A stretch of DNA of 64,000 nucleotides from Anthoceros angustus (GCA_010909165.1 MU008163.1:62001-126000), one strand, 5' to 3'; counted from the first letter of the stretch, positions 14,601-64,000 are shown. The notes: generated by a model from the sequence alone, not told the origin. Made by a program: numbers and translations.

Positions 14601-15487
14601 ACTTTGGTACACTTAATCCACAAGACCCAGAGACTGTTCCTGCTCCACCTTCTCCTGTTATACTTGACCCAGGCCTTGAGCAAAGATACCCTACTAGAAA
14701 TGGCCGCCTATGTTACACTTTTTGTTAAGATTTGAACCCCCCCTTGTTGCAATTATGTTAAAATCTTGGTGTCTTGTTACACTTATTTGGCCCCTGGTTA
14801 CAGTCAGGCTTGGTAACCAACACTCCATCTTGTTACAGTCGTGTTACAGTCTTGTTGCAATTTTGTTGCAGTGTAGTGAGAGGTGGTATCTGCCCCTTTC
14901 AAAATTTCAACATATTTGCAACAACCAAAGTGTTACACCCTCTTTTGTTACAGTTTTGAGGCTTGGTACCGAACCTCCTCCCCATGTGTGTTTGCCATTA
15001 TTGCTTTCATTCCTGTGTTTTTCCCCTACCATTATTGTTATGCGTGTACTAGACTATAAGTATATAATATGCCTTGGCTTCCAAGTACGTATTGCCCGAT
15101 GTCATTACTCAAATACATATACGATGCCTTTTCAAATTAAGTATACGTACAAGTGGTATCCGTATTTGTGCACTCCGTTTTGCAATACGGTGCGGCCTGC
15201 AAATTATACGCGCGTTTGTTTCCACCCTATTCGCTGCAGTGCCTTTCACGTCACTCGTATTTCGTGCCCTTGTAGGCGTCCCCCGTATACGGTACTTGTT
15301 TTGGAAACCCTTACAGTCCACAAGAACAACAGAAGACGTTATTTCGTGCACCCTACAGCTAAGATGCCGGTTCTTTGCCGCATCCACATCCAAAATTGGG
15401 CGTCCTCCCTCAGCGCGCGGGATGAATCCACCGGCATCCACATCCGCGGTGTACCGTGCTCCCTCGTCGCGCCGGAGGAATGAACCG
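11613..15487. repeat. ~1.9-kb tandem duplication (Copia integrase plus left end of the CCCTA element)
   Basis: 11613-13507 repeats at 13506-15487. The left TIR CCCTACTAGAAATGG therefore also appears near 12800. Junction sequence AATGAACC|TCGACCCC. Confidence 0.88.
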
Positions 15488-35890: not shown

Positions 35891-36400
35891 ACGAGCTGGA
35901 GTAGCAAGAGACAACACGTGGTCGCACTCAGCTCAACAGAAGCTGAGTATTGCTCACATACTCATGCGTACAAAGACGGGCTTTGGCAGCTCTTAGAGCT
36001 AGCGGAACTTGGAGAAGCTCAGAAGATACCGAGACCATTATATTGTGATAACCAGAGTGCCATAGCACTCACCTATAACCCGAAGTTTCACGCGAGGACA
36101 AAGCATTTCGAAGTTCAGTTCCTTTTTATTAGACAAGTAGTAAGTGACAGCAAGTTTATAGTTCTATATCTGCCGACGGAGGAAATGACCGTGGATGTGC
36201 TCACCAAGGCACTCACCTCCGCCAAACACTATCAACATATAGCTAGAATGGGACTTAGAAGCCTGGCGCAAGTTATGTACAATAACTCAACAAAAACCAT
36301 GAAACCTAAGGTATAGGTGTTAAGTGGGAGTGTTAGAATAATAACATCCTAGCCCTTAGGGCACGTTTCACAGAACTTAGGCTAGATGCCGAAAGGCACT
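35790..36400 (+). mobile_element. Ty1/Copia RNase H, polypurine tract and start of the 3' LTR
   Basis: GYSNAD*AG...RKSTS...SWSSKRQHVVALSSTEAEY...LYCDNQSAIALTYNPKFHARTKHFEV...EMTVDVLTKAL; then AAGTGGGAG (36322-36330) followed by TGTTAGA at 36331. Confidence 0.9.
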
Positions 36401-41000: not shown

Positions 41001-41257
41001 CGTGCTGCTCTTGAAGTTAGTGGAGAAGGGGACGCAGGCCCTGGAATTATCCCCGGTAGACCACGTTCCCGAGCATGGTCCCGCCGTAGTGCGGCACGCC
41101 GAAGTTCCCGATGGCGCTGTTGTAGCTCTTCTTGGCAGCGGAGCGGGGAGGCGACGGTGATGCTGTTCTCCTCCACGACAAACCTGGCCTGCACCACCGC
41201 CACACATCCCAACAGCAGCAGCAGCAGCAAGCCCGGCGCCATGCGATTCCGATCCAT
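38017..41257 (-). CDS. VSR: Vacuolar sorting receptor (BP-80/VSR family), multi-exon; a few indels in exons 1-2 of this copy
   Basis: Signal peptide then RFVVEENS; [13 protein letters not shown]; PA domain; [18 protein letters not shown]; [10 protein letters not shown]; [16 protein letters not shown]; EGF repeats; TM segment ([10 protein letters not shown]...YKYRLR); tail [19 protein letters not shown] with the YMPL sorting motif; stop at 38019-38017. Confidence 0.95.
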
Positions 41258-41499
41258 GGCCCCGGCGCTACCAAACCCTCCTTCACTCCCGCCTCGCTCC
41301 GCGCGGCCGCCGCTCCGATACCGCCTGCTCAGCTCCGCGGCATGCAGGTCTGCAATTCCGTCTGTCATGCAAATCCGCCTCCGTGCCGCAGCAATCCGCG
41401 ATTTTCTGGCCCAGCTGCCGCCCGCCGCAAATGGAGTGCCGCACTCAAGCGAGCCCGAGGGCGAGCCCGGATCCGCCACGCGGCGCGTAGGCCGCAAGC

Positions 41500-43302
41500 G
41501 ACTGCCGTCCTTTCCAACTTTCCTGAAGTCAACCTCGAATGAGATACACTGCTCCCGAAACAAGGAGATTGCACAAAGCACAGACAGACAACAACCTCTG
41601 TATTGCCTCTGGTTGATGACAAGCGTGGGTAGTATTGTGACATCTCCCGCCTCCTTGTCCAACCTAACCACATGTGTCGCAGAGATGCATCAATGCAAGG
41701 CGAATTTCCACAAGGAAACACGATCTGAAGTCATGTAAGAAAGACTTTTGCTCAACCAGATCCGAATCAAGAGACCAAATGCTTCACCTGTGCATCTTGC
41801 TCCTTCTGCAGAACCTCATTGTCCAAATTGGCCTCAGGGTCGCCCATACATCGATTGATGTCATCCAGCGGAAGGCCTGGAAAAGTCAAACTAAGGACGT
41901 TATTCATGATACCTCTGCCTGCTGCACATTGGGCAGGCAAGCACCTAGGGTTGCTAGAATGAGAGATGGAACGGACCAAGCGACTTGATGACTTCTTCTG
42001 CACAGGCCTTGTTGTACTTCTGCTCTTTCATAGGGCACCTGATCTGGAAGTCCGTTACATAATCCCACCACACCCATGGCTTTTGCAACTTCTCTTTCCA
42101 ACCTTGAACACACATAACTGCCTCAAATTCTCTGTCACAACATCCTTGCCGTCATAGCCGATGGTGAAGTCCTGCTCAGGATCAGGAGCACAATATCTGC
42201 CATTGTTGATGCACTGGGCCTTGCACTGCTTGCTAAACAAGAAAGCCTGAGGGCAATACCACGTTATATAATGAGGTGTGAATTCCACATAGGAACCTTG
42301 CTCAAGGATCTCCGCAGCACCTTTGAACTCCTTCAAAAACCCCATAATGTTGTCACACTTCGGCCCACATTGATCGTTACTGTTAGTCCACAACTCATAT
42401 TCCACACGATTATCAGGATGGGGCAGCGACTCTCTCCAGTCCAAATTCAGGGTAACCATCTCGGTTTTGTCAGCCAGCCACTTCTTGAGCTCGTCGCCAA
42501 AGTTCTGCTCAATAAGAGCGGACGGGATGGTGATATTTAGCAAATAAGTAAACGCATCTGCATCCGCATCCGGTTGATCCATAGTGATAAGCAGTTCGGG
42601 CCTGTCATCAGCCACAAGGACAGCCGCCTCCAGCTTGCTGCGCATTCCACACCTTCTTCGCAAAGAAACAATCTGCACCAGCCAGCCAAACCGAGATCCA
42701 GACTTCATTAGAATACTTCCTCCGACAATAACGCATGCAAGACCAGAGCAGGAGGCTCGCCCGACAGCAAAACCGACTCAAAAACCCTGATCAAATGGCT
42801 CAAGACCAGGCATCCGACACTGGAATACATCAAGCTCACAAGTTTCAATCCAAACAAATTTCACACACACTCCGTCCACGCAGATCCACCAGATCCACAT
42901 CCAATCACCAGCTACGGCGCGCCACCACCCCGACAAATCAGATCCAAAACGAACACTCCACACCGGCGTACTAACTCAAACAGCGTGCACCGGACAACAA
43001 CCTCCGCGATCCGTGAGCAGAATAGTCGGCAACGCGCCGGGCGTGCTGCTCTTGAAGTTAGTGGAGAAGGGGACGCAGGCCCTGGAATTATCCCCCGGGT
43101 AGACCACGTTCCCGAGCATGGTCCCGCCGTAGTGCGGCACGCCGAAGTTCCCGATGGCGCTGTTGTAGCTCTTCTTGGCAGCGGAGGCGGGGGAGGCGAC
43201 GGTGATGCTGTTCTCCTCCACGACAAACCTGGCCTGCACCACCGCCACACATCCCAACAGCAGCAGCAGCAGCAAGCCCGGCGCCATGCGATTCCGATCC
43301 AT
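41500..43302 (-). pseudogene. VSR: Partial tandem copy of VSR (first exons), or assembly-duplicated 5' end
   Basis: 39458-41500 repeats at 41500-43553 (period ~2.04 kb). Exon 1 (43302-43002) is intact here, while exon 2 has a 2-nt deletion near 42625 that copy 1 lacks. Confidence 0.8.
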
Positions 43303-44794
43303 GGCCCCGGCGCTACCAAACCCTCCTTCACTCCCGCCCTCGCCCGCTCCGCGGCCCGCCGCTCCGATACCGCCTGCTCAGCTCCGCGGCATGCAGGTCT
43401 GCAATTCCGTCTGTCATGCGCAAATCCGCCTCCGTGCCGCAGCAATCCGCGATTTTCTGGCCCAGCTGCCGCTCCGCCGCAAATGGAGTGCCGCACTCAA
43501 GCGAGCCCGAGGGCGAGCCCGGATCCGCCTCACGCGGCGCGTAGGCCGCAAGCGACCAGATTTCTGCCAGGTGCGGCGAGAGGGCGTGAAAGGAGGCAGG
43601 ACCCGGTCGGTGTGGTTTCCGCACCCGTGGACTCCTGCCACAGCCTTGGCCCGCCTCAGGTCCCTGTATCGGTATACATTTTTTTCAGTTTCTGTCCCCA
43701 ATTATTGCCTGCATCATCCCATCATCCTTTCCTCATGGGTCGCGGCCCGGACCGGGCCGGATCGCCCCACACCTACGCGGTCAGTTATTCCATACCACTC
43801 AAAAATATAGAATTTTCTCATCTTCTCCACGGACCCTTCGCTCCATAAAGCGCTTCTTCTCCTGACATGCATACAGTACATCTATTGATTTTGTCGACCC
43901 ACTCGTTCCACGTGGGAAGCCCTAAGTTCCACCCGTCGTATGCACATATGCAACATGCTGTGAATGTTTTCAATCATCCAATCTTGCTTTGGCTAGGATA
44001 AGCATAAACATGTGAATATTTTAAATTAAATTAAACATGTAAAAAAATATAAATATTATCTTCCAAGAGTGACATCTATACATGAGTTCATTAGAACTCT
44101 TACAATGGATCAGTATTTGGATGGGTGTTGTCCATCCCAATTATAAAAATATCATGCTTTTATATTCTTAAGGCGGATTAGTACTTGGATCGGGTGCTGT
44201 CCATTTCACTTATGCAAATATCATGTCCTCATCTCGGCATTCTATAGGGAGGGCCGTCCTGTGGTAATCCCCTTTGAGGTTTCTCCATATTATATTCGAG
44301 GTTCTCCATATCACATTCGACCACAAGACTTCGATGTATACTTTGAAATATCTATATAAAGTCTTTAAATTCATAAAATATCTAAATAAAATCTCTAAAA
44401 AAGAGTACAGATGCTGGTCGGGCTAGGAGTTTTCGTCCGCCGTCACTTGCAAGGTGAATACCTCTATGTACCAAGATTAAAATACGGTATCATCAACCAA
44501 AATTGTACCCTTGAAGTATCGTATTCATACTATCATGTGCCAGTGTCACCGCCCTGTGACTGGGACTAACTGTCTCAGTTACTAACCGAAATCAGTGCAA
44601 TCACGGACTTGTTCGTCGCAGATGGCGAGAGCCTCAGGGCGGCATCAGCCGGGGGCCAGGCTGCACAGCGGATTGCGCACGGCGTACACAGGAGGATGGT
44701 GGATTGAATCGAATTTCTGCGTTTTATTTCTTGTGTCCGCCGAGATTCTGTGAGCAGGCAAGGAGGAAGAAGCGAGATCTCACAATTCTGAGCT

Positions 44795-46633: not shown

Positions 46634-46786
46634 AATTACATCTGACATGTCTTCTATTCTGTGAGGCTAGCCAAATGCCCTTATAGTTAATTATTATAAA
46701 CTATATCCAAATTACATCCGACATGTCTTCTATTCTGTGAGGCTAGCCAAATGCCCTTATAGTTAATTATTATAAACTATATCCAA
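46634..46786. repeat. 2 x 76-bp tandem repeat
   Basis: AATTACATC(T/C)GACATGTCTTCTATTCTGTGAGGCTAGCC... at 46634 and 46710. Confidence 0.9.
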
Positions 46787-47002: not shown

Positions 47003-47425
47003 AGCTCAACAATGCCATAAAAGTCTATTGCCCTTGCCCAATAAGCTCAACAATGCCATAAAAGAATGGGGTTGGTCTCCCCCTGTGTGGTTTTCTTCAT
47101 AAAAGAATGGGGTTGGTCTCCCCCTGTGTGGTTTTCTTCTTCAAGGAACGGGCGTCGATCGCCCTTTAGAGAGCATTGGCCAACGCAATGTACAGGGGAT
47201 GTGGCATCTTCGGCACCAGTGATAGGTAGGCCTTTTCATATCCCAGACTATGATATTCTCAGAGCAGAAATTAGTTTCAAAATAGGTGTGATAGGTAGGC
47301 CTTTTCATATCCCAGACTATGATAACCTGTGATAGGTAGGCCTTTTCATATCCCAGACTATGATAACCAGTGATAGGTAGGCCTTTTCATATCCCAGACT
47401 ATGATAACCAGTGATAGGTAGGCCT
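47003..47425. repeat. Cluster of short tandem repeats (22-bp x2, ~39-bp x2, ~41-bp x4-5)
   Basis: AAGCTCAACAATGCCATAAAAG twice; AAAGAATGGGGTTGGTCTCCCCCTGTGTGGTTTTCTT twice; GTGATAGGTAGGCCTTTTCATATCCCAGACTATGATA repeated from 47218 to 47425. Confidence 0.9.
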
Positions 47426-50400
47426 TGACATGCGGCTCGGGTAGGAAGATGGGATATGGGTGATAGCATGAATACTTTAGAAGGCGATAGTGAGAGTTAC
47501 AATCACGCCCAAAACCCATGCATGTGTCTACATATATATTTAGCTGGTCAGTTAGGATAAACCCAACCACTATGCTAGTGGCCCAACGAGGGTAAGAACC
47601 CTAATAGTCAATGCTGTAACGAACGTGGCAGTCGCCCACACACGAAGCGTGGGCCTAACAGAGATCGATCATGGCGCGATGGCCAAGATAGACGGATGGC
47701 GTTGATAGGGTGACCAGCCTAACCAACCAAGAAGCTACCGATATATGAGGCGGCGACTAGCTTGATGAAGTTACGATGCACGGAAGACACATGCACTCTT
47801 TGTTTCGCTACATATTGCACACGATTTCTTCGGCGTATTCATACATACCGTGAGCCTCGATGTGGTGCTGCAGGATGGCGTGACTACTCTCAACTCCAAG
47901 CCTCGCCGCACGAGACCCAAGTGCTTCCCTCGATTGAAGGGTGCGGCGAATTTGTTACTTCATCAATCGTTTTCGATCTTCTCCACATGTGAGTGGAGGT
48001 GGTGGCGGCAGCGGAAGGGCTTCTCACCAGCCGCTATCATCACGATTGAAGTGATGTTGCATCAAGTTCGCATTTGAGCATACATAGCCTCGCCACCGGG
48101 TGGTTGCAAGCGGTACTTGCTAGTTGTTTTACTCACTATTTGAAACCGGCCTCTTTCCACGCTTGATTCCATGGGTGATGCATGAGCCGGAGCGGCCGAG
48201 GACAAGAGACATCCCGTTAGGGCTACGCCGAACGTGCTCACACCGGAGGAGGTGGGCGCGACGGCGGCGGTTTCTGAGTGAGGAAGCTGGCGAGGAGGAA
48301 CAGGAGGGTTTGCAGACACCTGCTACAGCTGAGGATAGTTGGTCACCTCTGAACAACTGGCCTGGTCTGATCAACACCACCAACAGCCAGCCAACAAGTG
48401 GCCAGTTCATACAATCGCATGGGTCTGTGGACCTAGGAGCTTGCAATCCAGGGTCAGGGCACGCAGAGTCTGACGCATCTGAGGAGTCAGATATCATGGA
48501 GGGAGGGCCACCAGCCTACAAGCAGGAGAAGTTCTCTGGGCGACCTGGAACTCAGACATTGAGGGACTTTAGGTTGTTCGTGAATGGCATGATCAGTCGT
48601 GTGAAATTCAAACACGGATCATCTTATACCTCCCTATATATGTTTGAGCAGTTGGCCGGTTCCATGGCGGATGAAGCTCTGGACTTGTATGAGGCTCACT
48701 TTGCTGACCTCACTGCAACAGTCCAGACTCCAAACCCACTTTTCCTGAGTGCCCTGCAACTGGCCTACAACGCCAAGTTGGCAACTGCGATCAACACGCA
48801 TCGTCGAATAGCGGTGACAATTGCTTCCACCGCCCTTCAGGTGAGCTGTGGGCGGGTGGCGACCACAGTGGTGTGAGTGAGTTCATCTATACCCCAAATC
48901 ACGCCAACCCAGTGGAGGTATTCATGGGGATATTAGAGAAGGCCTTCCCTCTCAAAACGCCGGAGAAGATTGCAGAATTGGCAGCCTTTGCACGCAAGAA
49001 GGAGGAAACGGTGCAAATGACTTTCCGCAGATTGCAGAAGCTGCGGGAGGGAACAGGGATGCTAACGGATCAAGAGGCGGCTGAGAAGTTTCTCACAGCT
49101 TTAGAGGGTGACCCTTTGTTCCATTTTCAACTCATCACCTCATTGGTGGATAAGTATGGGGACTCGTACACGCTGGAACAGGTTCACGAGGAGGCAGAGC
49201 GGAAGGAGATAGCATTCTCAGCTTATGCATCCAGGCACTCGAAGGCCTTCACACACTATCAGAGCATGTTCTCAAGTAAGGGAACATCGCCAGTGAGTAG
49301 TCCCAAGAGTCAGTAAGCCAAACTGCTCGAGCGCAGCAGGGTGGCCCCACTGCAATCATTGTGGCGGGCCCATCCCACCGGCATGGGTGCCCACCGACCG
49401 CACGCACGCCGCCAGTCGGGCATCTTGTTACGGTGTGCTTCGCACGGCGGAGATACCAAGAGCGGGATCGGGAGCCACGAGCGATGCACCGCCGATGCCG
49501 GGAGTATGACCGCACCACAAGCCTGGCAGTGGAGCGGTGCGGATAAAGCCAAGGCAAAGGCGTGAATCTTGCCGACGCTCCTTAGAAGCGCTTACGCCCT
49601 CACCACACGGTAGGGGCATTGGTGGCCAACATGGGCAATGGTTACTACCGCTCCGCTTATCAGACCCTGGCCTGGCACACAGTCTATGTTCGCAGATGCC
49701 GAGGAGGAAGATTATGGATTGCCACACCAAGCTTGCAACCACTTGCAAGTTGTTGTGAGACTGTGACTACCCGCATCGTGGTTGGGGCATGAGCTGAAGG
49801 CAGCAGTTGGAGGGGTGGTGATGGCTAATGCCACAAGACAGCCGAGGCCGGCCATTCCCGCCTTTTGCCACATTGCCATCCGGTGCACAACTCCAGTACG
49901 GGGACAAGATCATCTAGGTGACCCAGACGCACGGAATGCGTGCCATGACACTGCAAGGCAGCAGGAGGTCGATTCCGGGCAGATATATTTGCTACCCCGC
50001 ACCGTCACCCGTAGCCGTGACAAGGAAACCGGTAGACATGCCACGCTTTCCCTCGATGACTTGGGCATAGGGCTGGACGTTGCATCGAATCTTTGGAGCC
50101 AACCCGGCCGACGCAATGGCGCCGTTGGGTGACCAACCTTTACCCACCCATGCGGGATGGGTGTTACCCACGACTCATGAGGTTACCGCTAGGGAGTTTC
50201 GCAAGGCTGTGCCACTCAACGAGCGGATCGCAGAGAGCGGATAGCACCCACAAACCGGGCGAGTTCGGGTTAGCAATGCCATGGTTGACAATCTGCAGGC
50301 ACGCCATCACAATCGGTATGCCCCCAAATGGTACTCCTTGACACTGGGGCCCCTGGCCATCGGTGGCCGCAGACGGTTTCGCGGAGATGCTCTTAAGAGC

Positions 50401-53400
50401 TCCCATGGAACATCCGGATCGCATCAGGGGCCATAGAGCTGATGGGGAAATCACAAACCGGCGGCGCATCACATTGAAACTGGACGCCATGACATGACAT
50501 TAGCTGTCCATTGTTTAGTGACCATCGCTACCAATTATGATGTTGTTGGGGCAAGAATTTCTTCCCGCCATGTCGATTTACAATTGGATGACAGGCCTAC
50601 TACGCCGATTGGCAAACGTGGAGGACGAGGTGGCCCACTTTCCTTACATCCGCATGGAAGGAATGATGAGGATTTGTCTATGCGCCACATCCGACAACAA
50701 CCGCGCGCGACGCACCGATGGCAAGGGACACCACTCACGTGGGATGATGGTTGTCACCCGAGCTCGAGGATGAGCCTAATGAAGCATGGGCGGCAATAGC
50801 ATGTATCACGATGCCGCGGTTGTTTCGCGGGAAAAGATGCAACTATCATGTTGTGGGGGTCAAGGATCAAGTGGCCCGTGCCTGACTCCGAAAAGACCTA
50901 CACCGACCGCTCACCTGTGCACTATTGATCATCAACCCATCGGTGGACACCGTAGCAGGAATGACGGTGGTTGAACTCTTTGGGTTATGCACAGGCCTAG
51001 AAGCAATTCTCAAGGCCGGGCTCACTATCCACCGGTACATCTACTGTGACAACTGTGAGATCTCCCAAACATTGGCTGCCAGATCCAAGGGCTGCGCTTT
51101 CCTACCCCTCGGTGGCAGTACCTTCGACCATGCCACGGATGTACGGTACATCCAAGAGCGTCACATCCACGCATTGGCTCCCATGGACTTGGTCATTGCT
51201 GGATGGGAGTGCCAAGGGTTTTCGGCCGCCGTCACCGCAAGACCCACGGACGGGGCTTTTTCGAGACTTACAGAGATATCGGTGTGGGCACCAGATAGCC
51301 CTCATTGTGCACCGCTGGAAAACACACCCGCCGCTTTGACTACTGGCCCAGTGAAACAAGACATGATGCTCGTGCAACATCACAGGACCCCCTTCCTCAT
51401 GGATGCAAAGACAAGTGGGCGTTACGCGCACCGCCTACGCAACTATTGGACAAATTGGGTGCCAAGGGCGGTGCTGGAGATAGTGCTTAGCAACACTACA
51501 CGCGACCCGACGTTGGCCTTGCAGACCGTATTGAAACCTCACCACCAAGCCAGGCCTGTCAGGGCTGCCGAGAGAGCGCCCTGGTACCCCACCAACATTC
51601 CTGGGGCACCCAGAAGCACTCTCCCAACACTGGTCACTTTTCCCGCTTCACATGCTTACAGGGGACAAGGTGCTGGATTGCTCCTAAATACAACCACACA
51701 ACAATGGGAGGAGCCCTGCGTGGAAGAACGGGAAAGGCTAATGGGTTTCCAAACTCACTCCACCGCCGAAGCCCCCAAGCAAAGACTTGTGGCCATGGAC
51801 CTCAACGCCACATGGTTGGTTAGCTTGTGTTTGGCATTCCAGATCTTGACAGTGTCCAAGCAAAGATTCGCCACGACATGCCGCCCCATCGATGCGACAC
51901 TTTCCTTTCCGGATTTACCACCTCATCCTTCCGGCTCGATCCAGGGGGGGAGGAGCAGACCGTATGGACTGAGCAGGCAGATTCGAGGTCTACTTTTCTT
52001 GCATCAACCCTTCAGGATGCCGGGACAGATGGAGGGGGAGCGCAGCCAAGCCACCTTTAACGGCGGACACGTTCCTTTGGACCATGGGACCTGAGCTTAC
52101 TGATGACCAGCGTGAGCGGATCAGGACATTATTGCTTAGGTACAAGGATTGTTTTGCATTTTCAATGAAGGAGCTCAAGCGGTGCAACGTGACCATTTCG
52201 TATCAAGTCGACATCGAGGAGCCCATCTACCACGAGTACCGCTCAAGAATCGGAATGGGAAATGGTCGACGCCAGTGCAAGGAGCTCTTGGATGCCGGAC
52301 TCATCCGACCGTTCGATTTCGCCACCGCCATGCCACCAAAAAGAAAGATGCCGGGTGGATCGAGAAGAGGATGTGCGATTATCGCCCATCAATGCCGACC
52401 GCCAAGACCGTTACCCCATGCCAACTCAGGAGATTTTTGTGATTGGCGCCCCGTATTTACTTTTCTCCGGACTTGAGACAAGGTTTCAACGTGAGTGAGG
52501 AGGACATCAAAAGACCGCATTCCACGGTTCTCAGGAATGGCTAGTGATGCCTTTTGGGTTCGAACGCACTGTAACATTCCCGGTGATGGACCTAGTGTTG
52601 ACCGGTTGCGCTAATCTACTTTGTTACATAGACGATGTGCTTGTGCACAGTGCGACTTCGAATCACACTTGGTCCACCTTGAGGACTGCTCCGCCACGAA
52701 GGCCCAATTGACTTGTCACCCAGCAAAGTGCGAATTTGGGATGAACACTGTGGCATATTTGGGTCATAGGATTGTCCAGAATGGCATGATGCCACATGCG
52801 CCCAAGATTCAAGCCATCTTGCGGGTCAAGGAACCCACCAATGTCTCACCGTGAGGGCTGCCCGGCTTGTGCAACTATTATCGTGTATATCCAGAACTTC
52901 AGCAGAATTGCCAAGCCACTCAATGACATGTTGCGCAAGGACACTACATGGGCATGGACGCGGCTCAGCGTTGATGAGTCAAGTCACACATGCACCGATC
53001 ATGGCCAGACCAGACTTTGGGAAACCCTTTGTTGTCCATACCGACTGGAGCTGCTTAGGCTTGGGAGCTGTCTTGGCACAATTGGATGAGCATGGGCATG
53101 AGAGAGTCATAGCTTATGCTTCGCATAGCAACAACAGAGCTAAGGCAAATTACAGCAGCTATGAAGGCGAGTGTCTCGCCGCAGTATGGGCAGTTTGCCA
53201 TTTTAGACCCTACCTTTACGGCCAGCCTTTCACCCTAGTCACGGATCACCAGCCCTTGAAGTGGTTAATGGCCAACTCAAAGCTAAGTGGGAAACTCGCC
53301 AGGTGGGCGATGATTTTGCAAGACTACGAGTTCGTGGTGGTGCATCGGCCCGGAGTCAAGCATCAGAACGCAGATACCCTATCCAGGAACCCGGATGAGA

Positions 53401-55570
53401 GCTCTGAGGATAGCACGGAGGCACGGCAAGACGGGGAGCTACATGAGGCTTTCACGGTTGCCGCCTCGATGACATGCTTAGGGGGCGGTGTAAAATGCCG
53501 GCAGAAACTCGTCAAGGACATCGAAGACCGATACCCTCGTATGTGCAACAAAGCGTGTTGATGCCGCATTGATCGCAGATGAATCGACGAACGGCCGCCG
53601 TATCACCGGCATGATGGCTACCTTGTCGAGGTTGGGCAATGGCGTGGAACGGCTTGTGCCTCCACCGGCGAGGCGCCTTTATGCGTGTGACATGGGCCAT
53701 TTTGGTGTTAAGCGAACTTCTTGCTCACTCCCCACTTCTACTGGCACGGGATGTACCTGCAAGTGAAGCAACAGGTGGCATGTTGTGAACAATGCGATCG
53801 GGTGAAGACATCATTCACCATTCAGCATCCCCAGTTGCACCCGTTGCCCATTATGGGCCTATTTTTCAGGTGGTCATGTGACCTGATTGGGGAACTGCCG
53901 AGGACGCCCAGGGCAAACGTGTATGTGATGGTGATGATGGAACACTTCTCCAAGTGGGTGGAGGTAGTGGCTCTCCCCGATAAGAGTTCCCGTAGCACCG
54001 CACAAGCATTCTTGCATAATGTGTTGGGGAGATTTGGCGGCTGCGCGGAGTGCTTGACAGATCAAGGGTCAGAGTTCCGCGGGGAATTCCAAGATCTCCT
54101 GGATGCGGCCCTGATAGATCACCGCCTCACCGAGACCATCCGTGCCGATGGTCCGGCCGGATGGTGCAAACAATTAAGAAAGGGCTCCGCAAGCTATGCC
54201 TCCAAATGCCCAAGACGGATTGGGACTTGGCCTCCTTATATATGGGCTATCGATGAGCAAGCATGCGCCTTGGCCCATTTCTCGCCATATTTCTGTTGTT
54301 TGAAGAGAACCCATGCCCGCCATTGCCCGACAAATGCATGTGGACTTGGACAACCACCACATGGGCCCGAATTGTAGGCGAAAGGGCAGCCCTCTTCAAG
54401 CGATGCCCATGGCCATGGCAAATCGCATCGCAAAGACCGAGATACCTTACGATGCGACACCAATGAAGCTTCAGCCCAAGCTCAAGAAGTTCCGTGGGAT
54501 TTTGTGTATCTTGACAAGAATACCTTGGACACTAGCACCCAGACATGTGCTCGGTGAAGGAGATGCGGGGAATGGCGTTTTGCACATGGGTCGATGGGAG
54601 GACCATGACCGATCACATGAAGAATGCGCACCGCCACTCTGCCCAACTTGGATCCTAACATCGTGACAAGAGATTGGATCCCACCACCACTCAATCTGCA
54701 GAGGGTGGACGACGCAGTAGCTCATGCTCTGCAGCAGTTTATCACTTGTTCCTGTCACACCACCTCTCACCAAGTGCGGATCAACTATGGTATGGGTTCG
54801 CTAATTCCCCCCCGAGAGCGTCACTGCTAGTACGTTCTCCACCCACAACAACATTACATCGGAAACTGTGTCGATCATCTCCGGCAGGCTAACCGCCCAA
54901 ACGGGGAAGATGGATGCCAATAATCTAACATACCGTGAGCTTATACTTGCTGCCCAACCGAATGTGCTGTAAGGAAGGGAAGGTCGATCGAGCAGAGCAC
55001 CTTCACAAGATGCCACACCGAAATCTGAGAGCATCACGACACCGACATGCGGCTCGGGCGGGAAGATCGGATATGGGTGATAGCATGAATACTTTAGAAG
55101 GCGATAGTGAGAGTTACAATCACGCCCAAAACCCATGCATGTGTCTACATATATTTATGGGTTAGGATAAACCCAACCACTATGCTAGTGGCCCAACGGT
55201 AGCAGGTAAGAACCCCAGTCAATACCTGTAATCTAACGAGTAGTGCGTGCCACACACAGGCGTGGCCCAACAGATCGATCATGGCGCGATGGCGATAGGG
55301 TGACGGATGGCCAAAGATAGGGTGACGGCACCAACCAATAAGCAAGCCACCGAATATGAGGCGTCAAGACGCAGCTGATGAAGTTACGCCAGATGCACGG
55401 AAGACACTGCACTCTTTGTTTCGACATATCTGCTGTAATACGATTTCTTCGTACCATTCATACATACCGTGAGCCTCGATGTGGTGCCCGCAGACGGCGT
55501 GACTACTCTCAAGCCTCAAGCCTCGTTCGAGACCCGTGCTTCCCCTCGATTGAAGGGTGCGCGAATTTGT
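47426..55570 (+). mobile_element. Ty3/Gypsy LTR retrotransposon copy 1 (Gag - PR - DNMT3-like - RT - RH - IN - PHD)
   Basis: Gag 48150-49500 with two CCHC-like knuckles (CNHCGGP.H, GHLVTVCF); protease VLLDTGA ~50328; DNMT ~50961-51830; RT ~52090-52850; RNase H FVVHTDWS...IAYAS..N.....[33 protein letters not shown]; integrase GHFGVKR..., WSCDL.G..., EHFSKW, TDQGSEF. Left LTR-like repeat truncated. Confidence 0.93.
50961..51830 (+). other. C5-cytosine methyltransferase (DNMT3-like) domain inside Pol, copy 1
   Basis: VELFG(G)LCTGLEAILKAGLTIHRYIYCD; DVRYIQERHIHALAPMDLVIAGWECQGFS; LENTPA; PFLMDA...AHRLRNYWTN; EERERLMGF; AMDLNA.WL. Confidence 0.88.
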
Positions 55571-56250
55571 TGAAGATGGATGCCAATAATCTAACATACC
55601 GGTGAGCTTATACTTGCCGCTTTTTTGCGGTCCCAACCGAATGTGCTGTAAGGAAGGAAGGTCGGATCGAACAGGAGCACCTTCACAAAGATACTCACCG
55701 AAATCTCGACAAGATCACGACACCGACATGCGGCTCGGGCAGAAGATCGGATATGGGTGATAGCATGAATACTTTAGAAGGCGATAGAGAGTTACAATCA
55801 CGCCCAAAACCCATGCATGTGTCTACATATATATTTAGCTGGTCGGAGGATAAACCCAACCACTATGCTAGTGGCCCAACGAGTAGGTAAGAACCCTAAT
55901 TCAAGTGTAACGAACGGGTAGCGTGCACCACCGAAGGCGTGGCCATCAGATCGATCATGGCGCGATGGCCAAAGATAGGGTGACGGATGGCCGTTAGGGT
56001 GACGGCAGCTAACCAACCGCGAAGCTACCGACAAGGTGATATGAGGGCGCTGAAGACAGCTGATGAAGTTACTGGCGTATGCACGGAAGACACTGCACTC
56101 TTTGTTTGACATATACATTGTCGATTTCTTGGCGTATTCATACATACGTGTGAGCCTCGATGTGGTGCTGCGGGATGGCGTGACTACTCTCAACTCAAGC
56201 CTCGCAAGTTGCGAGACCCAAGTGCTTCCCCTCGATTGAAGTGCGGCGAA
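54906..56250. repeat. Two adjacent ~665-bp LTR-like units between the Gypsy copies
   Basis: Unit GAAGATGGATGCCAATAATC...GCGAATTTGTT at 54906-55570 and 55572-~56250. It recurs at 63255-63918 and again from 63920 to the window end; truncated copy at 47426-47955. Confidence 0.85.
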
Positions 56251-59200
56251 TTTGTTACTTCATCAATCGCTTGATCTTCTCCACATGTGAGTGGAGGTGG
56301 TGGCGGCGCGGAAGGGCTTCTCATTGCAGCTAGCCGTATCATCACGATTGAAGTGATCGGTGTTGCATCAAGTTCGGCATTTGAGGCATAGCCTCGCCAT
56401 CGGGTGGTTGCAAGCGGTACTTGCTCGTTGTTTTACTCACGGCGCTATTTGAGGGGCCTCTTTCCACGCTTGATTCCATGGGTGATGCAATCGATGAGCG
56501 AACTTGATCAGGAGGACAAGAGACATCCCAGGTTAGAACGTCGAGCGTGCTCACGCAGGAGGAGGTGGGCGCGCGGCGGTTTCTAGTGAGGTGGCGAGGA
56601 GGAGCAGGAGGGTTTGCGGACACATACGGTGAGGATAGTTGGTCACCTCGACAGGCGGCTGATATCAACACCACCAAGCGGCCGACAAGTGGCGGTTCAT
56701 ACTGTCGCATGGGTCGTGGACCTAGGAGCTTGCAATCCGGTCGAGAACGCCGACGGCCTTGTCGAGTCGAGATATCATGGAGGAGGGCCACCAGCCTACG
56801 GAGAAGTTCTGGGCGACTGGAACTCGGACATTGAGGGACTTTAGGTTGTTCGTGAATGGCATGATCGATCGTGAAATTCAAACACGGATCAGCTTATACC
56901 TCCCTATATATGTTTGAGCAGTTGGCGGTTCCATGGCGGATGAAGCTCGACTTGTATGAGGCTCACTTTGCGACCTCACCGCACGGACTCCAAACCCACT
57001 TTTCAGTGCCCGCAGGCGGCCTCGCCAAGTTGGCAGCGCGATCAACACGCCAATTTGGAATAGCGGTGGGACAATTGCTTCCACCGTCACACGGTTGTGA
57101 GCGCGGTGGCGGGTGGCGACCACAGTGTGAGTGAGTTCATCTATACCCCAAATCACGCCAACCCGATTAGGTTCATGGGGATATTGAGAAGGCCTTCCTC
57201 TCAAAACGCCGGAGAAGATTGCGGAATTGGCAGCCTTTGCACGCAAGAAGGAGGAAACGGTGCAAATGACTTTCCGCAGATTGCAGAAGCTGCGGGAGGG
57301 AACAGGGATGCTAACGGATCAAGAGGCGGCTGAGAAGTTTCTCACAGCTTTAGAGGGTGACCCTTTGTTCCATTTTCAACTCATCACCTCATTGGTGGAT
57401 AAGTATGGGGACTCGTACACGCTGGAACAGGTTCATGAGGAGGCAGAGCGGAAGGAGATAGCATTCTCAGCTTATGCATCCAGCACTCAAGGCCTTCACA
57501 CACTATCGAGCATGTTCTCAAGTAAGGGAACATCGCCAGTGAGTAGTCCCAAGAGCTGCAGCCAAAAGCCAAGCAAGCGGCAGCCGACCACTTGGCATGC
57601 AATCATTGTGGCGTCCGGAGCACATCACCGCATGTAAGTGCCACACGAGGGGCTCTCACCGCCGCCAGTCGGGCATTTGTTACGGTGTGCTTCAGCACAC
57701 AGCGGAGATACCAAGAGTGCGGGATCGGGAGCCAAAGAATGATCTTTGAGTATGACCCACAAGCCTGTGGCACTTCCAGGAGCGGTGCGTGATAAAGCCA
57801 AGGCAAAGGCGGTAGTCTTGACAAGGTCGGCTCCTTAGAAGCCGCTGCCCTCACCACCACGGTAGGGGCATTGGTGGCCAACATGGGCAATGGTTACTAC
57901 CGCTCCGCTTATCAGACCCTGGCCTGGCACACAGTCTATGTTCGTGATGCCGAGGAGGAAGATTATGGATTGCACACCAAGCACTTGACTTGCAAGTTGT
58001 TGATGAGACTCGAGACTACCCGTGGTTGGGGCATGAGCTGAAGGCAGCAGTTGGAGGGGTGGTGATGGCTAATGCATCCGGTTACAAGGCATGAGGCAGG
58101 CGGCCATTCCCGATCTTTTGCCACATTGCCATCTGGGTGCACAACTCCAGCACGGGGACAAGATCATCTAGGTGACCCAGACGCACGAATCGTGCGTGAC
58201 ACGCAAGCGGCAGGAGGTCGATTCCGAGAGATATATTTGCTACCGCATACCGTCACCCGAGGCCGTGTGAAACCGTAGACATGCCTTTCCCTCGATGACT
58301 TGGGCATAGGTGGGCGTTTACATCGAGATCTTGGAGCCAACGGTCGAGACGCAATGGCGTCGATTGGGGTGACCAACCTTTACCCACCCATGCGGGATGG
58401 GTGTTACCCACCACAAGACTCATGAGGTTACCGCTAGGGGCTCGGCAAGGCTGCCACTCAACGAGCCCGGATCACGAGAGAGCGGATAGCACCCACAAAC
58501 CGGGCGACGATTCGGGTTAGCAATGCCATGGTTGACAATCGCAGGCACGCGTCACCATCATGGTATGCCCCCAAAATGGTACTCCTTGACACCGGGGCCC
58601 AGCCCGTCATCACCGTAGTGCGGCCGCTTCGCGGGAGATGCTCTTAGAGCTCCCATGGAACATCCGGGCGCATCGGGGGCCATAGAGCCGTGTGGGCATC
58701 AAACCGGTGCATCACATTGAAACTGTGGACGCCGCGCCATGACATTAGCTGTCCATTGTTTAGTGACCACTGCTACCAATTATGATGTTCTGTTGGGGCA
58801 AGAATTTCTCTTCCCGCCAGGTGTCAGTATCGACAATTGGACAGAACAGGCCTACTACCGGCCAGATTGGCAACGTGGAGGACGAGAGGTGGCCCACTTT
58901 CCCTTACATCTGCATGGAAGGAATGATGAGGACGAAGCTTCGTTGGCTATGCGCCACATCCTGACAACAAACTGCTGCGCCAGCACTTCGCTGATGGCAA
59001 GGGACACCACTCACGTGGACAGATGGTTGTCACCGAGCTCGAGGATGAGCCTAATGAAGCATGGGCGGCAATAGCATGTATCACAGATGCCGTGCAGGTT
59101 GTTTCGGCGGGAAAAGATGCAACTATCATGTTGAAAGGGGTCAAGGATCAAGTGGCCCGTGCTCTGACTCTGCTGGACAGCACCTACACCGACCCTGCTC

Positions 59201-62200
59201 ACCCAGGCACTATTGATCATCAACCCATCGGTGGACCGCACTGGCGGGGAATGACTGGTTGAACTCTTTGGTGGGTTATGCACGAGCCTAGAAGCGATTC
59301 TCAAGGGGCTCACTATCCACGGTACATCTTGTGACAATGTGAGATCTCCCAAACATTGGCTGCCAGCATCCAAGGGCGCTGCTTTCCTAGTCGGATTCTC
59401 TGTGGCAGTACCTTCAACCATGCCACGGGATGTACGGTACATCCAGGCGTCACATCCATGCATTGGCTCCCATTGACTTGGTCATTCTTGGATGGGAGTG
59501 CCAAGGTTTTCTCAGGCTGGCGGCGCTGCAAGACCTGACGGGGCTTTTCGAGACTTCAGATATCTTGGTGTGGACGCAACGGTATAGCCCTCATTGTGCA
59601 TACCTGCTGGAAAACACACCTGCTCAGTTTGACTCACGGGCCCAGGTGAAAGAAGACATGATGCTCGTGCAACATCACCTGGGACCCCCCTTCCTCATGG
59701 ATGCAGCACAAGTGGGCAGCTACACGCACCGCTTACGCAACTATTGGACAAATTGGGTGCCAAGGGCGGTGCTGGAGATAGTGCTTAGCAACACTACACA
59801 CGACGTTGGCCTTGCACCGTGTGAACCTCACACCACCAAGCCGGGCTGTCGAGTGCCAGAAGCGCCTGGTACCCCACCAACATCCAAGGGCACCCGGAAG
59901 CACTCTCCCAACACTGGTCACTTTTCCCGCTCACATGCTTACAGGGGACAAGGTCTTTGGATTGCTCCTAAATACAACCACACAACAATGGGAGGAGCCC
60001 TGCGTGGAAGAACGGGAAAGGCTAATGGGTTTCCAAACTCACTCCACCTTGTAGTTACTAGCGTTGTGCAGCACTTGGCAGGGCCATGGACCTCAACGCC
60101 GTCACATGGTTGGTTAGCTTGTGTTTGGCATTCCAGATCTTGACAGGTCCAAGCAAAGATTCGCTCACGCACATGCCCCATGCGTACACTTTCCTTTCCG
60201 GATTTACCACCTCATCCTTGGCTCGATCCGGGGAGGAGACCGTATGGTGGCGGTCGAGGTCTACTTTTCTTGCATCAACCCTTGAGGATGCAGGACGAGA
60301 TGGAGGAGCGCCACCAAGCCACCTTTTGGCGGACACGTTCCTTTGGACCATGGGACTGAGCTTCTTGACCAGCGTGAGTGGATCGGACATTGCTTAGGTA
60401 CAAGGATTGTTTTGCATTTTCAATGAAGGAGCTCAAGCGGTGCAACGTGACCACATTTCGTATCAAGTTGACCACTGAGGAGCCCATCTACCGACGACGG
60501 TACCGGCTCAGCAAATCGGAATGGGAAATGGTCGACGCCAGGTGCAAGGAGCTCTTGGATGCCGGACTCATCCGACCGTCAAGTTTGGATTTCGCCGCTG
60601 CCACGGTCATGCCACCAAAGAAAGACAGCCAGGGGCTGTGGACTGAGAAGAGGATGTGCGGGGATTATCGCCCCATCAATGCCGTCACCGCTCAAGACCG
60701 TTACCCCATGCCAACTCCAGAGGAGATTTTTGACAGCATTGGGCAGTCCCGTTACTTTTCTACGCTGGACTTGAGACAAGGTTTCAACCAGGTACCGGTA
60801 GCAGAGGAGGACATCAAAAAGACCGCATTCCACGGTTCTCAACAGCTGTGGGAATGGCTAGTGATGCCTTTTGGGTTCAGGAACGCACCTGTAACATTCC
60901 AACGGGTGATGGACCTAGTGTTGACCGGGTCTGCTAATCTACTTTGTTACATAGACGATGTGCTTGTGCACAGTGCAGACTTCGAATCACACTTGGTCCA
61001 CCTTGAGGACCTGTTCCAGCGCCTACGCAAGGCCCAATTGACTTGTCACCCAGCAAAGTGCGAATTTGGGATGAACACTGTGGCATATTTGGGTCATAGG
61101 ATTGTCCGTGGCATGATGCCACATGCGACCAAGATTCAAGCCATCTTGCGGGTCAAGGAACCCACCAATGTCTCACCGTGAGGGCGTTCGGCTTGTGCAA
61201 CTATTATCGGTGTATATCCGAACTTGACAGGTGCCAAGCCACTCAATGACATGTTGCGCAAGGACACTACATGGGCATGGACAAGTGCGGCTCAGCAGGC
61301 GTTTGATGAGCTGAAGTCACAGCTCACATAGGCACCGATCATGGCCAGACCAGACTTTGGGAAACCCTTTGTTGTCCATACCGACTGGAGCTGCTTAGGC
61401 TTGGGAGCTGTCTTGGCACAATTGGATGAGCATGGGCATGAGAGAGTCATAGCTTATGCTTCTCGTAGCAACAACAGAGCTGAGGCAAATTACAGCAGCT
61501 ATGAAGGCGAGTGTCTCGCCGCAGTATGGGCAGTTTGCCATTTTAGACCCTACCTTACGTGACCTTTCACCCTAGTCACGGATCACCAGCCCTTGAAGTG
61601 GTTAATGGCCAACTCAAAGCTAAGTGGGAAACTCGCCAGGTGGGCGATGATTTTGCAAGACTACGAGTTCGTGGTGGTGCATCGCCGAGTCAAGCATCGA
61701 ACGAATACCTATCCGAACCCGGATGAGAGCTCGAGGATAGCGGAGGCACGGCAAGACGGGAGCTACATGAGGCTTTCACGGTTGCCCTTTGGTGACATGC
61801 ATGCCTAGGCGGGTGCGTGATGCGGAAACTCGTCAAGGACATGGGAAGACCAGCATACCCTCGGTATGTGCAACAGCAGTTGATCTTGCATTGTGCAGAT
61901 GAGCTGGAGACAGCAGCGCCGTATCAGCATGATGGCTACCTTGTCAGGAGGTTGGGCAATGGCGTGGAACGGCTTGTGCCTCCACCCGGCAGGCGCCTTA
62001 TCAAGCGTGTGCACATGGGCCATTTTGGTGTTAAGCGAACTTACAGTTTGCTCACTCCCCACTTCTACGGCACGGATGTACCAAGTGAAGCAACGGGTGG
62101 CTGTTGTGAACAATGCGATCGGGTGAAGACATCATTCACCATTGATCCCAGTTGCACCGTTGCCCATTATGGGCCTATTTTTGTGGTCATGTGACTGATT

Positions 62201-63918
62201 GGGAACCGCCGAGGGCGCCCAGGCAAGCGTGTATGTGATGGTGATGATGGAACACTTCTCAAGTGGGTGGAGGTGGCTCTCCCAGATAAGAGTTCCGTAG
62301 CACCGCACAAGCATTCTTGCATAATGTGTTGGGGAGATTTGGCGGCTGCGCGGAGTGCTTGACAGATCAAGGGTCAGAGTTCCGCGGGGAATTCCAAGAT
62401 CTCCTGGATGCGGCCCTGATAGATCACCGCCGAACCAGCCGAGACCATCCTCAGGCCGATGGTATGGCCGAGCGGATGGTGCAAACAATTAAGAAAGGGC
62501 TCCGCAAGCTATGCCTTCAAATGCCCAAGACGGATTGGGACTTGGCCCTCCCTTATATTGCTATGGGCTATCGCATGAGCAAGCATGCGCCAGCCCATTC
62601 TCGCCATATTTCTGTTGTTTGAAGAGAACCCATACTTATGCCATTGCGACAAATGCAGTCGTGGACTTGGACAGTCCACCACATGGGCCCGAATTGTAGG
62701 CGAAAGGGCAGCCCTCTTCACAAGCGATGCATATGGCCATGGCAAATCGCCCATAAGACCGAGATACCTTACGATATGCGCACACCCGCTGGAAGCTTGA
62801 GCCCAAGCTCGAAGTTCCAGTCGGGATTTGTTTATCTTGAGCCAGCAATACCTTGGACACTAGCACCGGACATGTGCTCGGGTGAAGGAGATGCGGGGAA
62901 TGCGTTTTCTTGCGGCCGGATGGGAGGACCATGACCGATCACATGAAGAATTGCGCACCCTGCCACTTGCCCAACTTGGATCCTAACATCGTGATAGATT
63001 GGATCCCACAGGACACCCACGATCTGCGGGGAGGGTGGGTGACGAGCTCATGCTCCCTGCGGCCAGTTTGCAGCAGGGGTTATCACTTGTTCAGTCTCAC
63101 ACCACCTCTCACCGAAGTGCCAGATCAACTATGGTGCCCCGTTACTTAATTCTCGAGAGGCGTGCAGTACTAAGCAGTTCTCCACCCACAACAATGCTAC
63201 ATCGTTAGGCCGTATGGATCTAGCTTGGCTTGCCAACCTACGCCCAAAGCTGGGGAAGATGGATGCCAATAATCTAACATACCGTGTGAGCTTATACTTG
63301 CTTTTTGCGGTCAAGAATGTCCAGTAAGGAAGGAAGGTCGATCGAACAGGAGCACCTTCACAAAGATGCACCATCCAAATCCGGACAAGATCACGACACC
63401 GACATGCGGTCGCAGAAGATCGGATATGGGTGATAGCATGAATACTTTAGAAGGCGATATGAGAGTTACAATCACGCCCAAAACCCATGCATGTCTACAT
63501 ATATATTTAGCTGTCGATTAGGATAAACCCAACCACTGCTAGTGGCCCAACGAGTAGGTAAGAACCCTAATAGTCAGCCCGAGTAGAGCGTGGTAGCCGT
63601 GCCACACACGTGGCCAGATCGATCATGGCGCGATGGCCAACATAGGGTGACGGATATGGACATAGGGGAACCAACCGCTGCAAGCCCGGTGATAAAGCGG
63701 GCGCTGAAAACGCGATTGATGAAGTTACGCGTATGCACGGAAGACACTGTGCACTCTTTGTTTCGAGACATATCTTTGCAATACGATTTCTTCGGCGTAT
63801 TCATACATACAGCCAGCCTCGATGTGGTGCTGCCGATGGCGTGACTACTCTCAACTCCAAGCCTCGCAAGTTGCGAGACCCAAGTGCTTCCCCTCGATTG
63901 AAGGTGCGGCGAATTTGT
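55572..63918 (+). mobile_element. Ty3/Gypsy LTR retrotransposon copy 2, same DNMT-bearing family
   Basis: Colinear with copy 1 (period ~8.3 kb): VLLDTGAQP ~58577; DNMT ~59251-60120; continuous RT ORF 60378-61181 (RMCGDYRPINA, YFSTLDLRQGFNQ, WLVMPFGFRNAP, YIDDVLV); RH 61340-61700; IN 62000-62720; PHD ~62990-63140. Confidence 0.93.
59251..60120 (+). other. DNMT3-like methyltransferase domain, copy 2
   Basis: ELFGGLC; IDLVILGWECQGF; YLLENTPAQFD; PFLMDAAQVGSYTHRLRNYWTNW; WEEPCVEERERLMGF; QRCAALGRAMDLNAVTWL. Confidence 0.88.
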
Positions 63919-64000
63919 TGAAGATGGATGCCAATAATCTAACAAGTGTGAGCTTATACTTCTTTGTTTTTTTCGGTCAATGAATGTGCCGGAGTAAGGA

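Follow-up and report, generated by a model that had tools for sequence, protein, structure and literature searches.

Analysis of a 64,000-nucleotide stretch of DNA (GCA_010909165.1 MU008163.1:62001-126000, hereafter called the window) reveals that the region 47427-64000 very probably consists of two copies of a Ty3/Gypsy retrotransposon bearing a DNMT3-type cytosine methyltransferase (DNMT) domain within the Pol part of a single gag-pol reading unit, in a genome whose neighbouring genes are those of an embryophyte. The copies are arranged head to tail with a period of approximately 8.3 kb, and a blastn self-comparison aligns 47427-55615 with 55725-63961 at 85% identity. The element is of the Gypsy-DNMT3 type already known, found here in a new host group, and the host range of this type appears to reach the land plants.

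The Ty3/Gypsy identity, as originally predicted, is borne out by the Pfam matches in the window (RVT_1, RT_RNaseH, rve and Integrase_H2C2), which occur in the Gypsy order with the integrase after the reverse transcriptase (RT), and by the collinearity of both copies, in tblastn alignments, with P0173, an intact metagenome polyprotein of 2358 amino acids (aa) whose Pfam architecture comprises an Asp protease, DNA_methylase, RVT_1, RNase H, integrase and PHD. The order of domains in both copies is gag, protease (PR), DNMT, RT, RNase H (RNH), integrase (INT) and a PHD-like tail, the DNMT motifs being located between the protease signature LLDTGA (50334 in copy 1 and 58582 in copy 2) and the RT signature YIDDVL (52625 and 60948, respectively).

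The methyltransferase domain

Both copies contain the C5-methyltransferase motifs I, IV, VI, VIII, IX and X in the order found in DNMT3, as had been proposed. For copies 1 and 2, respectively, and on the plus strand throughout, a motif scan locates ELFG (motif I) at 50973 and 59261, GWECQGF (motif IV) at 51201-51221 and 59490-59510, ENTPA (motif VI) at 51318 and 59610, HRLRNYWTN (motif VIII) at 51429 and 59727, ERERLMGF (motif IX) at 51726 and 60010, and AMDLNA (motif X) at 51792 and 60083. The proposal of a complete domain between protease and RT in both copies holds for the position and the motifs, but only copy 1 (50952-51863, plus strand, within the open reading frame (ORF) 50925-52094) has the domain in one open frame. 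When scored against a family hidden Markov model (HMM) of 358 positions, built from 28 relatives with the window row left out, copy 1 yields 234.7 bits (E 1.3e-72) over profile positions 11-346, i.e. 336 of the 358, in a single frame. The domain of copy 2 (59255-60172, plus strand) matches the same HMM in at least four pieces distributed over three frames (59255-59308, 59427-59951, 59863-60048 and 60062-60172). In copy 1 a few residues are deleted locally within motifs I and X and downstream of motif IV; the string ELFGGLC is present in copy 2 at 59261 and lacks one Gly in copy 1. Several of the motif strings quoted in the original prediction blend the two copies, and the Q of the motif X string QRCAALGRAMD is a stop codon in copy 2.

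The 389-aa ORF 50925-52094 retrieved 549 protein matches at E<=1e-3, 306 of them at E<=1e-10, from 1.84 billion cluster representatives; a word-index, length-limited homologue search with the same noisy ORF returned a single fragment only. Compared with the PDB by phmmer, it matches DNMT3A, DNMT3B and DNMT3C only (best E 5e-7). A profile of 29 sequences including the window, termed A2, ranks DNMT3A first (1.9e-25), followed by DNMT3C (5e-23) and DNMT3B (2e-22), then DRM enzymes (5e-15 to 8e-12) and M.HhaI (4e-10), with DNMT2 weaker and DNMT1 not listed. The profile alignment runs along DNMT3A residues 7-275 with the motifs in linear order, and the domain is therefore not rearranged in the manner of DRM. 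Moreover, an AlphaFold2 model of the corresponding domain in an intact relative (P0095, residues 955-1325; mean predicted local distance difference test score (pLDDT) 91.8, predicted template modelling score (pTM) 0.89) was compared with the PDB using Foldseek; the best 50 matches are all DNMT3A, DNMT3B or DNMT3C, with E down to 3e-18 and template modelling scores by target of 0.42-0.84, or 0.77-0.84 for chains comprising the catalytic domain only. DNMT3A is also the first match of this model in an ESM Atlas shape search. The phmmer search, the A2 ranking and Foldseek agree with the assignment made originally and, judged from sequence and modelled fold, the window domain is of the DNMT3 type with an unrearranged order of motifs.

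Other origins of the domain were considered and rejected. A DRM-type enzyme is ruled out by the linear order of motifs, and an origin from DNMT1 or a bacterial enzyme by the PDB ranking. A host DNMT3 gene interrupted by a transposon is ruled out by the identical position within Pol in both copies and in all 13 relatives of lineage A, the lineage with DNMT before RT.

Over the 29 domains including that of the window, the catalytic Cys, the Gly-Trp preceding it, the Glu-Asn of motif VI, the Arg-x-Arg (R192, R194), Trp and Asn of motif VIII and the Phe and Gly of motif I are invariant or nearly so; in profile A2, F27 and G29 of motif I are nearly invariant. The catalytic Cys is present in both copies and is invariant across the family. 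It had been noted originally that the Pro preceding it is replaced by Glu, and this is found in both copies. Among the 138 relatives with a recognisable motif IV, 97 have Glu and 32 Pro. All 13 proteins of lineage A have AGWECQG-x-S, as in the window, and lineage B (DNMT between RNase H and integrase) comprises 84 with Glu, 32 with Pro and a few with Ser or Asp, its motif IV being mostly CQD-LS. Pro is also found in three ORF1-type relatives of the window's lineage, P0002, P0166 and P0169. As for motif VI, lineage A generally has ENV; the window has ENT, as do its closest relatives (P0001) and most of lineage B. The replacement of Pro by Glu is a family trait across these relatives and is not limited to the window copies. 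The alternation of Glu and Pro in motifs that do not otherwise differ argues for a tolerated change and against decay, which does not in itself prove activity.

Organization of the array and its relatives

The array begins with a partial terminal repeat (47427-47956; blastn self-comparison and alignment A1), all features described here being on the plus strand. It is followed in copy 1 by a gag-like region with two ORFs of 250 and 147 aa (48124-49316), where tblastn places P0173 residues 190-304 on 48903-49247, and by protease remnants (50334-50563) in which LLDTGA (50334-50351) and LLGQEFL (50543-50563) stand in different frames. Downstream of the DNMT domain lie a frame-broken RT (52039-52890; tblastn with P0173 and P0095, YIDDVL at 52625-52642), an RNase H (52851-53561; Pfam RT_RNaseH 1e-37, 68% identity to the metagenome locus L002) and an integrase composed of the H2C2 zinc finger and the rve core (53721-54377; Pfam rve 3.6e-13, Integrase_H2C2 4.2e-5). 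Two complete tandem repeat units, identified in the self-comparison, occupy 54906-56256 between the internal regions (R1, 54906-55571; R2, 55572-56256). In copy 2, protease remnants are found at 58582-58906 (LLDTGA 58582-58599, LLGQEFL 58790-58810); the stretch 58754-58906 aligns in tblastn to P0173 residues 741-791, just before which P0173 has its Asp_protease_2 match. The RT and RNase H of copy 2 (60378-61757; Pfam RVT_1 9.9e-32 on 60378-61181) form one tblastn high-scoring segment pair in a single frame with P0173 residues 1359-1823 (50% identity, E 2e-129). The integrase and the C-terminal PHD-like tail (61940-63146) are frame-broken and align to P0173 residues 1908-2339, the PHD finger of P0173 being located at residues 2300-2344. 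Repeat unit R3 (63255-63919) and the start of R4 (63920-64000), cut by the window end, complete the array (63255-64000). Pfam gave no match on the broken protease and gag pieces of the window; a gag CCHC zinc knuckle is likewise without Pfam match in the window gag ORFs, zf-CCHC is found in the relative P0095, and the window gag aligns weakly to P0173.

The direct repeats, of approximately 670 bp each, are doubled between the copies. R1 and R2, like R3 and R4, abut directly with a precise junction and no spacer. The left-most repeat comprises only the last ~530 bp of the unit, begins exactly at the start of the long copy-to-copy alignment and has unrelated tandem repeats of 41 bp in front of it. 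Ahead of the repeat there is a purine run, GGGGAAGA; neither a tRNA-type primer-binding site nor TG..CA termini were recognised at the element repeats. The layout can be described either as a tandem array of ordinary long terminal repeat (LTR) elements with a truncated left LTR, or as two abutting elements of the A-coding-B-A-B type; either fits. On the latter reading A1 corresponds to 47427-47956, B1 to 54906-55043, A2 to 55044-55571 and B2 to 55572-55724, and the whole array reads A(47427-47956)-internal-B-A-B-A-internal-B-A-B. In L007, a metagenome relative with the same order of domains, an LTR-LTR junction borders the internal region at either end, without a clean fit to the A-internal-B-A-B arrangement. 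Within its regions 5595-6940 and 14146-16184, each of the 893-bp LTRs (91% alike) adjoins an additional, incomplete LTR copy; the outer LTR pair is 97.8% alike, above the inner pair, and an inverted LTR fragment follows at 15798-16184. A repeat search found no terminal repeats in the short metagenome loci L002, L005 and L006. To the left of the array, the 41-bp tandem repeats (47215-47431; 4-5 units, 95-100% alike) abut its end directly, and a 76-bp two-copy tandem repeat (46634-46785) lies 500 bp further left; both are free of the noise seen in the adjoining element sequence.

Domain mapping on 217 retrieved proteins distinguishes two architectures. The order RT-RNH-DNMT-INT(-PHD) is found in no fewer than 76 complete proteins, besides many partial ones, and DNMT-RT-RNH-INT in 13 proteins; the loci L002 and L004 also have the DNMT before the RT, as a DNMT ORF followed by an RT ORF. 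In the RT tree a single branch (SH-aLRT 99) separates the 13 elements with DNMT before RT, together with the window, from 34 RNH-DNMT-INT elements. The window RT, up to 55% identical to that of P0172, falls among the former. In the DNMT tree, with midpoint rooting, the RNH-DNMT-INT elements are essentially one clade and the others a grade; the window pairs with P0007 (support 96), a protein from Logan run SRR33208241 whose contig also has the DNMT upstream of the RT. Under this provisional root, one capture followed by one relocation would give the pattern. Two hosts among the relatives carry names: the streptophyte alga Closterium sp. NIES-53/54, whose elements have the domain order of the window, and the chlorophyte Monoraphidium neglectum, whose element has the other. 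The remaining relatives are from metagenomes or from assemblies without labels. By features, the nearest cluster in the ESM Atlas contains 57 eukaryotic members, of which Streptophyta are the commonest, and is taken as a lead only. These comparisons place the window element in a large natural family of green-lineage Gypsy elements that bear a DNMT, and show that the DNMT3-type domain was inherited together with the RT through a deep divergence within this Gypsy lineage.

Two members of the collection deserve a separate remark. P0209, an RT-RNH-DNMT-INT-PHD polyprotein of 1974 aa, carries the NCBI name 'Minisyncoccia bacterium' as part of a metagenome-assembled genome, groups with the Monoraphidium element (support 100) and is almost certainly eukaryotic algal DNA binned with a bacterium. 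P0002 is a gag-PR-DNMT ORF of 1775 aa whose first 1286 residues are without Pfam match; a 93-nt tandem duplication (94% alike) is located in its N-terminal part (L002, 2858-3043).

The published system closest by description is KnitGypsy-Dnmt3 of the charophyte alga Klebsormidium nitens (de Mendoza et al. 2018, PMC5890265). According to the available text of that paper, it is, as in the window, a Gypsy LTR element with an intronless, unrearranged DNMT3-type domain inside Pol in a streptophyte host, and its DIRS-like repeat layout, A-coding-B-A-B, is compatible with the partial repeat, internal region and two tandem repeat units observed here. Its host is an alga, whereas that of the window is an embryophyte, and the likeness is one of description, no K. 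nitens sequence being among the matches retrieved. A PHD tail is not mentioned in the available text (0 occurrences), whereas the window element has a PHD-like tail. The Closterium polyproteins P0174, P0175 and P0207 share with the window the order DNMT-RT-RNH-INT, the side of the RT tree (99) and the motif AGWECQG-x-S, but are distant in the DNMT tree, have ENV instead of ENT in motif VI and come from an algal host. Elements of the Monoraphidium type (MNEG_11595, here P0195, and many metagenome proteins) have homologous DNMT, RT, integrase and PHD domains and the same Glu/Pro polymorphism; they differ in the location of the DNMT between RNase H and integrase, in forming the sister lineage in the RT tree, and in a motif IV that is mostly CQD-LS.

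On the side of cellular enzymes, mammalian DNMT3A, DNMT3B and DNMT3C provide the best match in sequence and structure, with a linear I-X order and a short target-recognition region. The window domain is, however, only ~21% identical to them, lacks PWWP and ADD domains, has Glu for Pro and ENT for ENV, and is part of a retrotransposon polyprotein. The plant enzymes DRM2 and NtDRM are DNMT3-related and act de novo, and are matched by the profile (5e-15 to 8e-12), but their motifs have undergone circular rearrangement, and the alignment is confined to profile positions 11-146. SymbioDIRS-Dnmt3 (PMC5890265) and the EpiLTRs (bioRxiv 10.64898/2026.05.21.726589) are likewise retrotransposons with a captured cytosine methyltransferase. 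Their backbones differ, the first being of the DIRS type with a tyrosine recombinase and the second chromovirus-like with DAM and a DNMT4-related domain, and their hosts are dinoflagellates, Cymbomonas and Euglena; the DNMT4-like EpiLTRs of the latter two were described in the 2026 preprint. As stated originally, retrotransposon DNMTs have been published for dinoflagellates and a charophyte (PMC5890265). In the literature searched, retrotransposon DNMT3 is reported only from dinoflagellates and 'streptophytes' (that is, K. nitens) and no such element from a land plant; within it, the papers on hornwort and Marchantia chromatin and the one on plant DNMT3 do not mention such elements.

Frame breaks, host and placement of the array

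Several observations weigh against reading the array as a methyltransferase-bearing element resident in a plant genome. Many frame changes are needed in both copies. The Pfam model PF00145 (DNA_methylase), suggested as a check in the original prediction, is silent on both window DNMT ORFs even at E 10. The PHD finger is undetected by Pfam in the window pieces and is placed by collinearity with P0173 only. In the window domains, Glu stands where the Pro-Cys motif canonically has Pro. The CpG observed/expected ratio of the element (0.78) is not below that of the flanks (0.75), so that the deamination footprint which heavy CG self-methylation would leave is missing. KnitGypsy-Dnmt3, alone among homologues of this element type in having been assayed, did not methylate in yeast, a result that its authors call inconclusive in the available text (PMC5890265). 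Finally, no short-read contig bridges the junction between flank and element at 47427 and none crosses 47260-47427, loose ends being observed at 47260 and 47280. Of these points, the PF00145 result, like the missing Pfam matches for protease, PHD and gag, reflects the insensitivity of the models together with the broken frames, and not the absence of the domains.

Concerning the frame breaks, it is possible, if less likely than not, that both copies are genuinely decayed relics, in which a once working DNMT has fallen silent, nothing being expressed or active any longer, so that the array would be inert repeat DNA. This explanation is favoured by the frame breaks, which number dozens in the two copies, as it is by the distribution of copy-to-copy differences over codon positions in the RNase H ORF (16/14/16), a lack of bias that indicates no selection since the duplication. 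Moreover, in a sequencing-run search no run on record as RNA holds the window stretch, the one holder being DNA with a share of 0.20. On the other hand, the spectrum of differences between copies 1 and 2 is unlike that of natural decay: 781 substitutions with a transition to transversion ratio of 1.25 stand beside 316 indel events, repeats and coding parts being affected evenly, and the differences are strongly clustered (70% of differing columns). The damage is also patchy and specific to each copy. The DNMT is open over 389 aa in copy 1 and shattered in copy 2, and the RT is broken in copy 1 while the RT and RNase H of copy 2 align in one frame over 1.37 kb, its ORF 60378-61181 ending in a stop codon. 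Long ORFs are clean elsewhere in the window, e.g. a PPR ORF of 1057 aa, and the first 125 nt of the left repeat (47425-47549) match a contig of an Illumina DNA run, X1, with 1 mismatch. A homopolymer test was uninformative, 49-51% of 1-bp indels being located beside the same base, close to the chance level. On this evidence the spectrum would fit unpolished long-read sequence within a repeat better than natural decay, and noise is probably a major contributor to the frame breaks. The original view of the frameshifts as read noise in an intact and young family stands insofar as the breaks differ between the copies and are noise-like; noise, intactness and youth are not thereby established.

The host was assessed from its genes. 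An intact PPR-DYW ORF of 984 aa (26226-29180, plus strand), ending in GRP, is located 21 kb upstream of the array. Its named homologues are found in land plants only, with at most 46% identity (Diphasiastrum, Adiantum, Ceratopteris, Cryptomeria, Ginkgo, Sphagnum, Calypogeia and Ceratodon), which supports the land-plant host proposed originally, and its best matches (53%) are in unnamed Logan assemblies. The GRP-ending DYW variant is found in hornworts, lycophytes and ferns. These matches would fit a host from an embryophyte lineage that is not represented by a named proteome in the protein collection searched, and a hornwort specifically is plausible. Two further PPR-DYW fragments with repeated PPR units occur at 22012-22877 (minus strand) and 30771-31313 (plus strand).

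Logan contigs cover the element only sparsely and in fragments. Linkage of the array to the flanking genes by reads, also suggested originally as a check, was not obtained: no contig spans the junction, and the linkage to the flank consequently comes from the assembly alone. It is very unlikely that the array is misplaced, be it through gap filling with raw long reads, a mis-join, or contaminant algal DNA unlinked to the plant genes. Such an error would agree with the start of noise-like sequence inside the left repeat, with the lack of a contig across 47260-47427 and with the algal hosts of the closest named relatives. Run X1, however, holds flank sequence near-identical to the window, the start of the LTR at a k-mer depth of 16 compared with 5-7 for the unique flank, and several diverged members of the family; furthermore, the nearest algal DNMT is only ~35-45% identical, which excludes a recent contamination from a sequenced alga. 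The sister run of X1, X2, contains a contig of 4374 nt with a diverged gag, DNMT motif IV and motif VIII, in this order. If X2, guessed to be an RNA run, is indeed RNA, a relative of the window element is transcribed. This contig (corresponding to window 48986-51456) has a depth of 40 and 2250 letters between the gag and DNMT motifs, compared with 1908 in the window. The differences between the window gag and the diverged contigs of X1 and X2 fall mainly on every third base, a pattern seen in gag only, and would be the signature of purifying selection during the diversification of the family.

Elsewhere in the window, near-identical exon-like ORFs occur twice, approximately 2.2 kb apart (39917-40369 and 42055-42708, minus strand; 40736-41671 versus 42912-43496), as if part of a host gene had been duplicated locally in tandem; the product presumably resembles a vacuolar sorting receptor. 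The ORFs 2836-3351 (minus strand) and 35918-36316 (plus strand), which we take to be fragments of a Copia-type gag and of a Copia RNase H/C-terminal Pol, respectively, point to other retrotransposon debris in the window.

Possible activity and significance

As to the function of the domain, we tentatively propose a mechanism that, taken as a whole, falls somewhat short of being probable. The DNMT would be translated as part of Pol and either be freed by the protease or stay attached to the RT, so as to travel with RT and integrase in the particle, where it could methylate cytosines of the new DNA of the element or of the insertion site. The PHD finger of the integrase may read histone tails and thereby choose or hold chromatin.

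Alternatively, the domain may not be a DNA methyltransferase in practice. It could serve, in the manner of DNMT3L, as a regulatory or DNA-binding module through which host methyltransferases are recruited or blocked, or it could act on RNA. We consider this alternative unlikely. Glu in place of the near-universal Pro of motif IV in 97 of the 138 family members scored, the lack of CpG depletion in the element and the yeast result for KnitGypsy-Dnmt3 are in its favour. Dead paralogues of the DNMT3L type, however, lose the catalytic Cys, the Glu-Asn, the Arg-x-Arg and the Gly residues, and precisely these are invariant or nearly so in 29 divergent members of the family. The coexistence of Pro and Glu variants in both lineages, with motifs otherwise identical, suggests that the two are interchangeable. 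The yeast assay, for its part, failed for human DNMT3B as well according to the available text of PMC5890265, and the null result for KnitGypsy-Dnmt3 is inconclusive for this reason; de novo CG methylation in yeast is shown there for the dinoflagellate enzymes of the DIRS type.

Beyond the proposed methylation of element DNA or insertion site, a more far-reaching combination may be envisaged, in which the frameshifts are noise, the family is young and transcribed, and its Glu-Cys DNMT3-type enzyme methylates the new DNA of the element itself while guided to chromatin by the PHD finger. As a whole this is doubtful. If true, the precise repeat-repeat junctions would reflect circular or concatemeric replication intermediates, as the DIRS-like layout in Klebsormidium hints, and a tractable bryophyte would become a test bed for DNA methylation encoded by a transposon.

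For annotation, DNMT3-like matches in bryophyte genomes may be transposon-borne, and PF00145 alone misses such domains. Cytosine methylation is the main weapon of the host against transposons, and a transposon with its own de novo methyltransferase reverses this logic. So far such elements have been documented in dinoflagellates and one charophyte alga, with activity only for the dinoflagellate DIRS type. The picture is widened here to an embryophyte genome and to a very large green-lineage family with two orders of domains and a conserved Glu/Pro polymorphism in the catalytic loop, which provides natural sequences and hosts for tests of function, the candidates being methylation of the element's own cDNA, imitation of gene-body methylation and a restraint on copy number.

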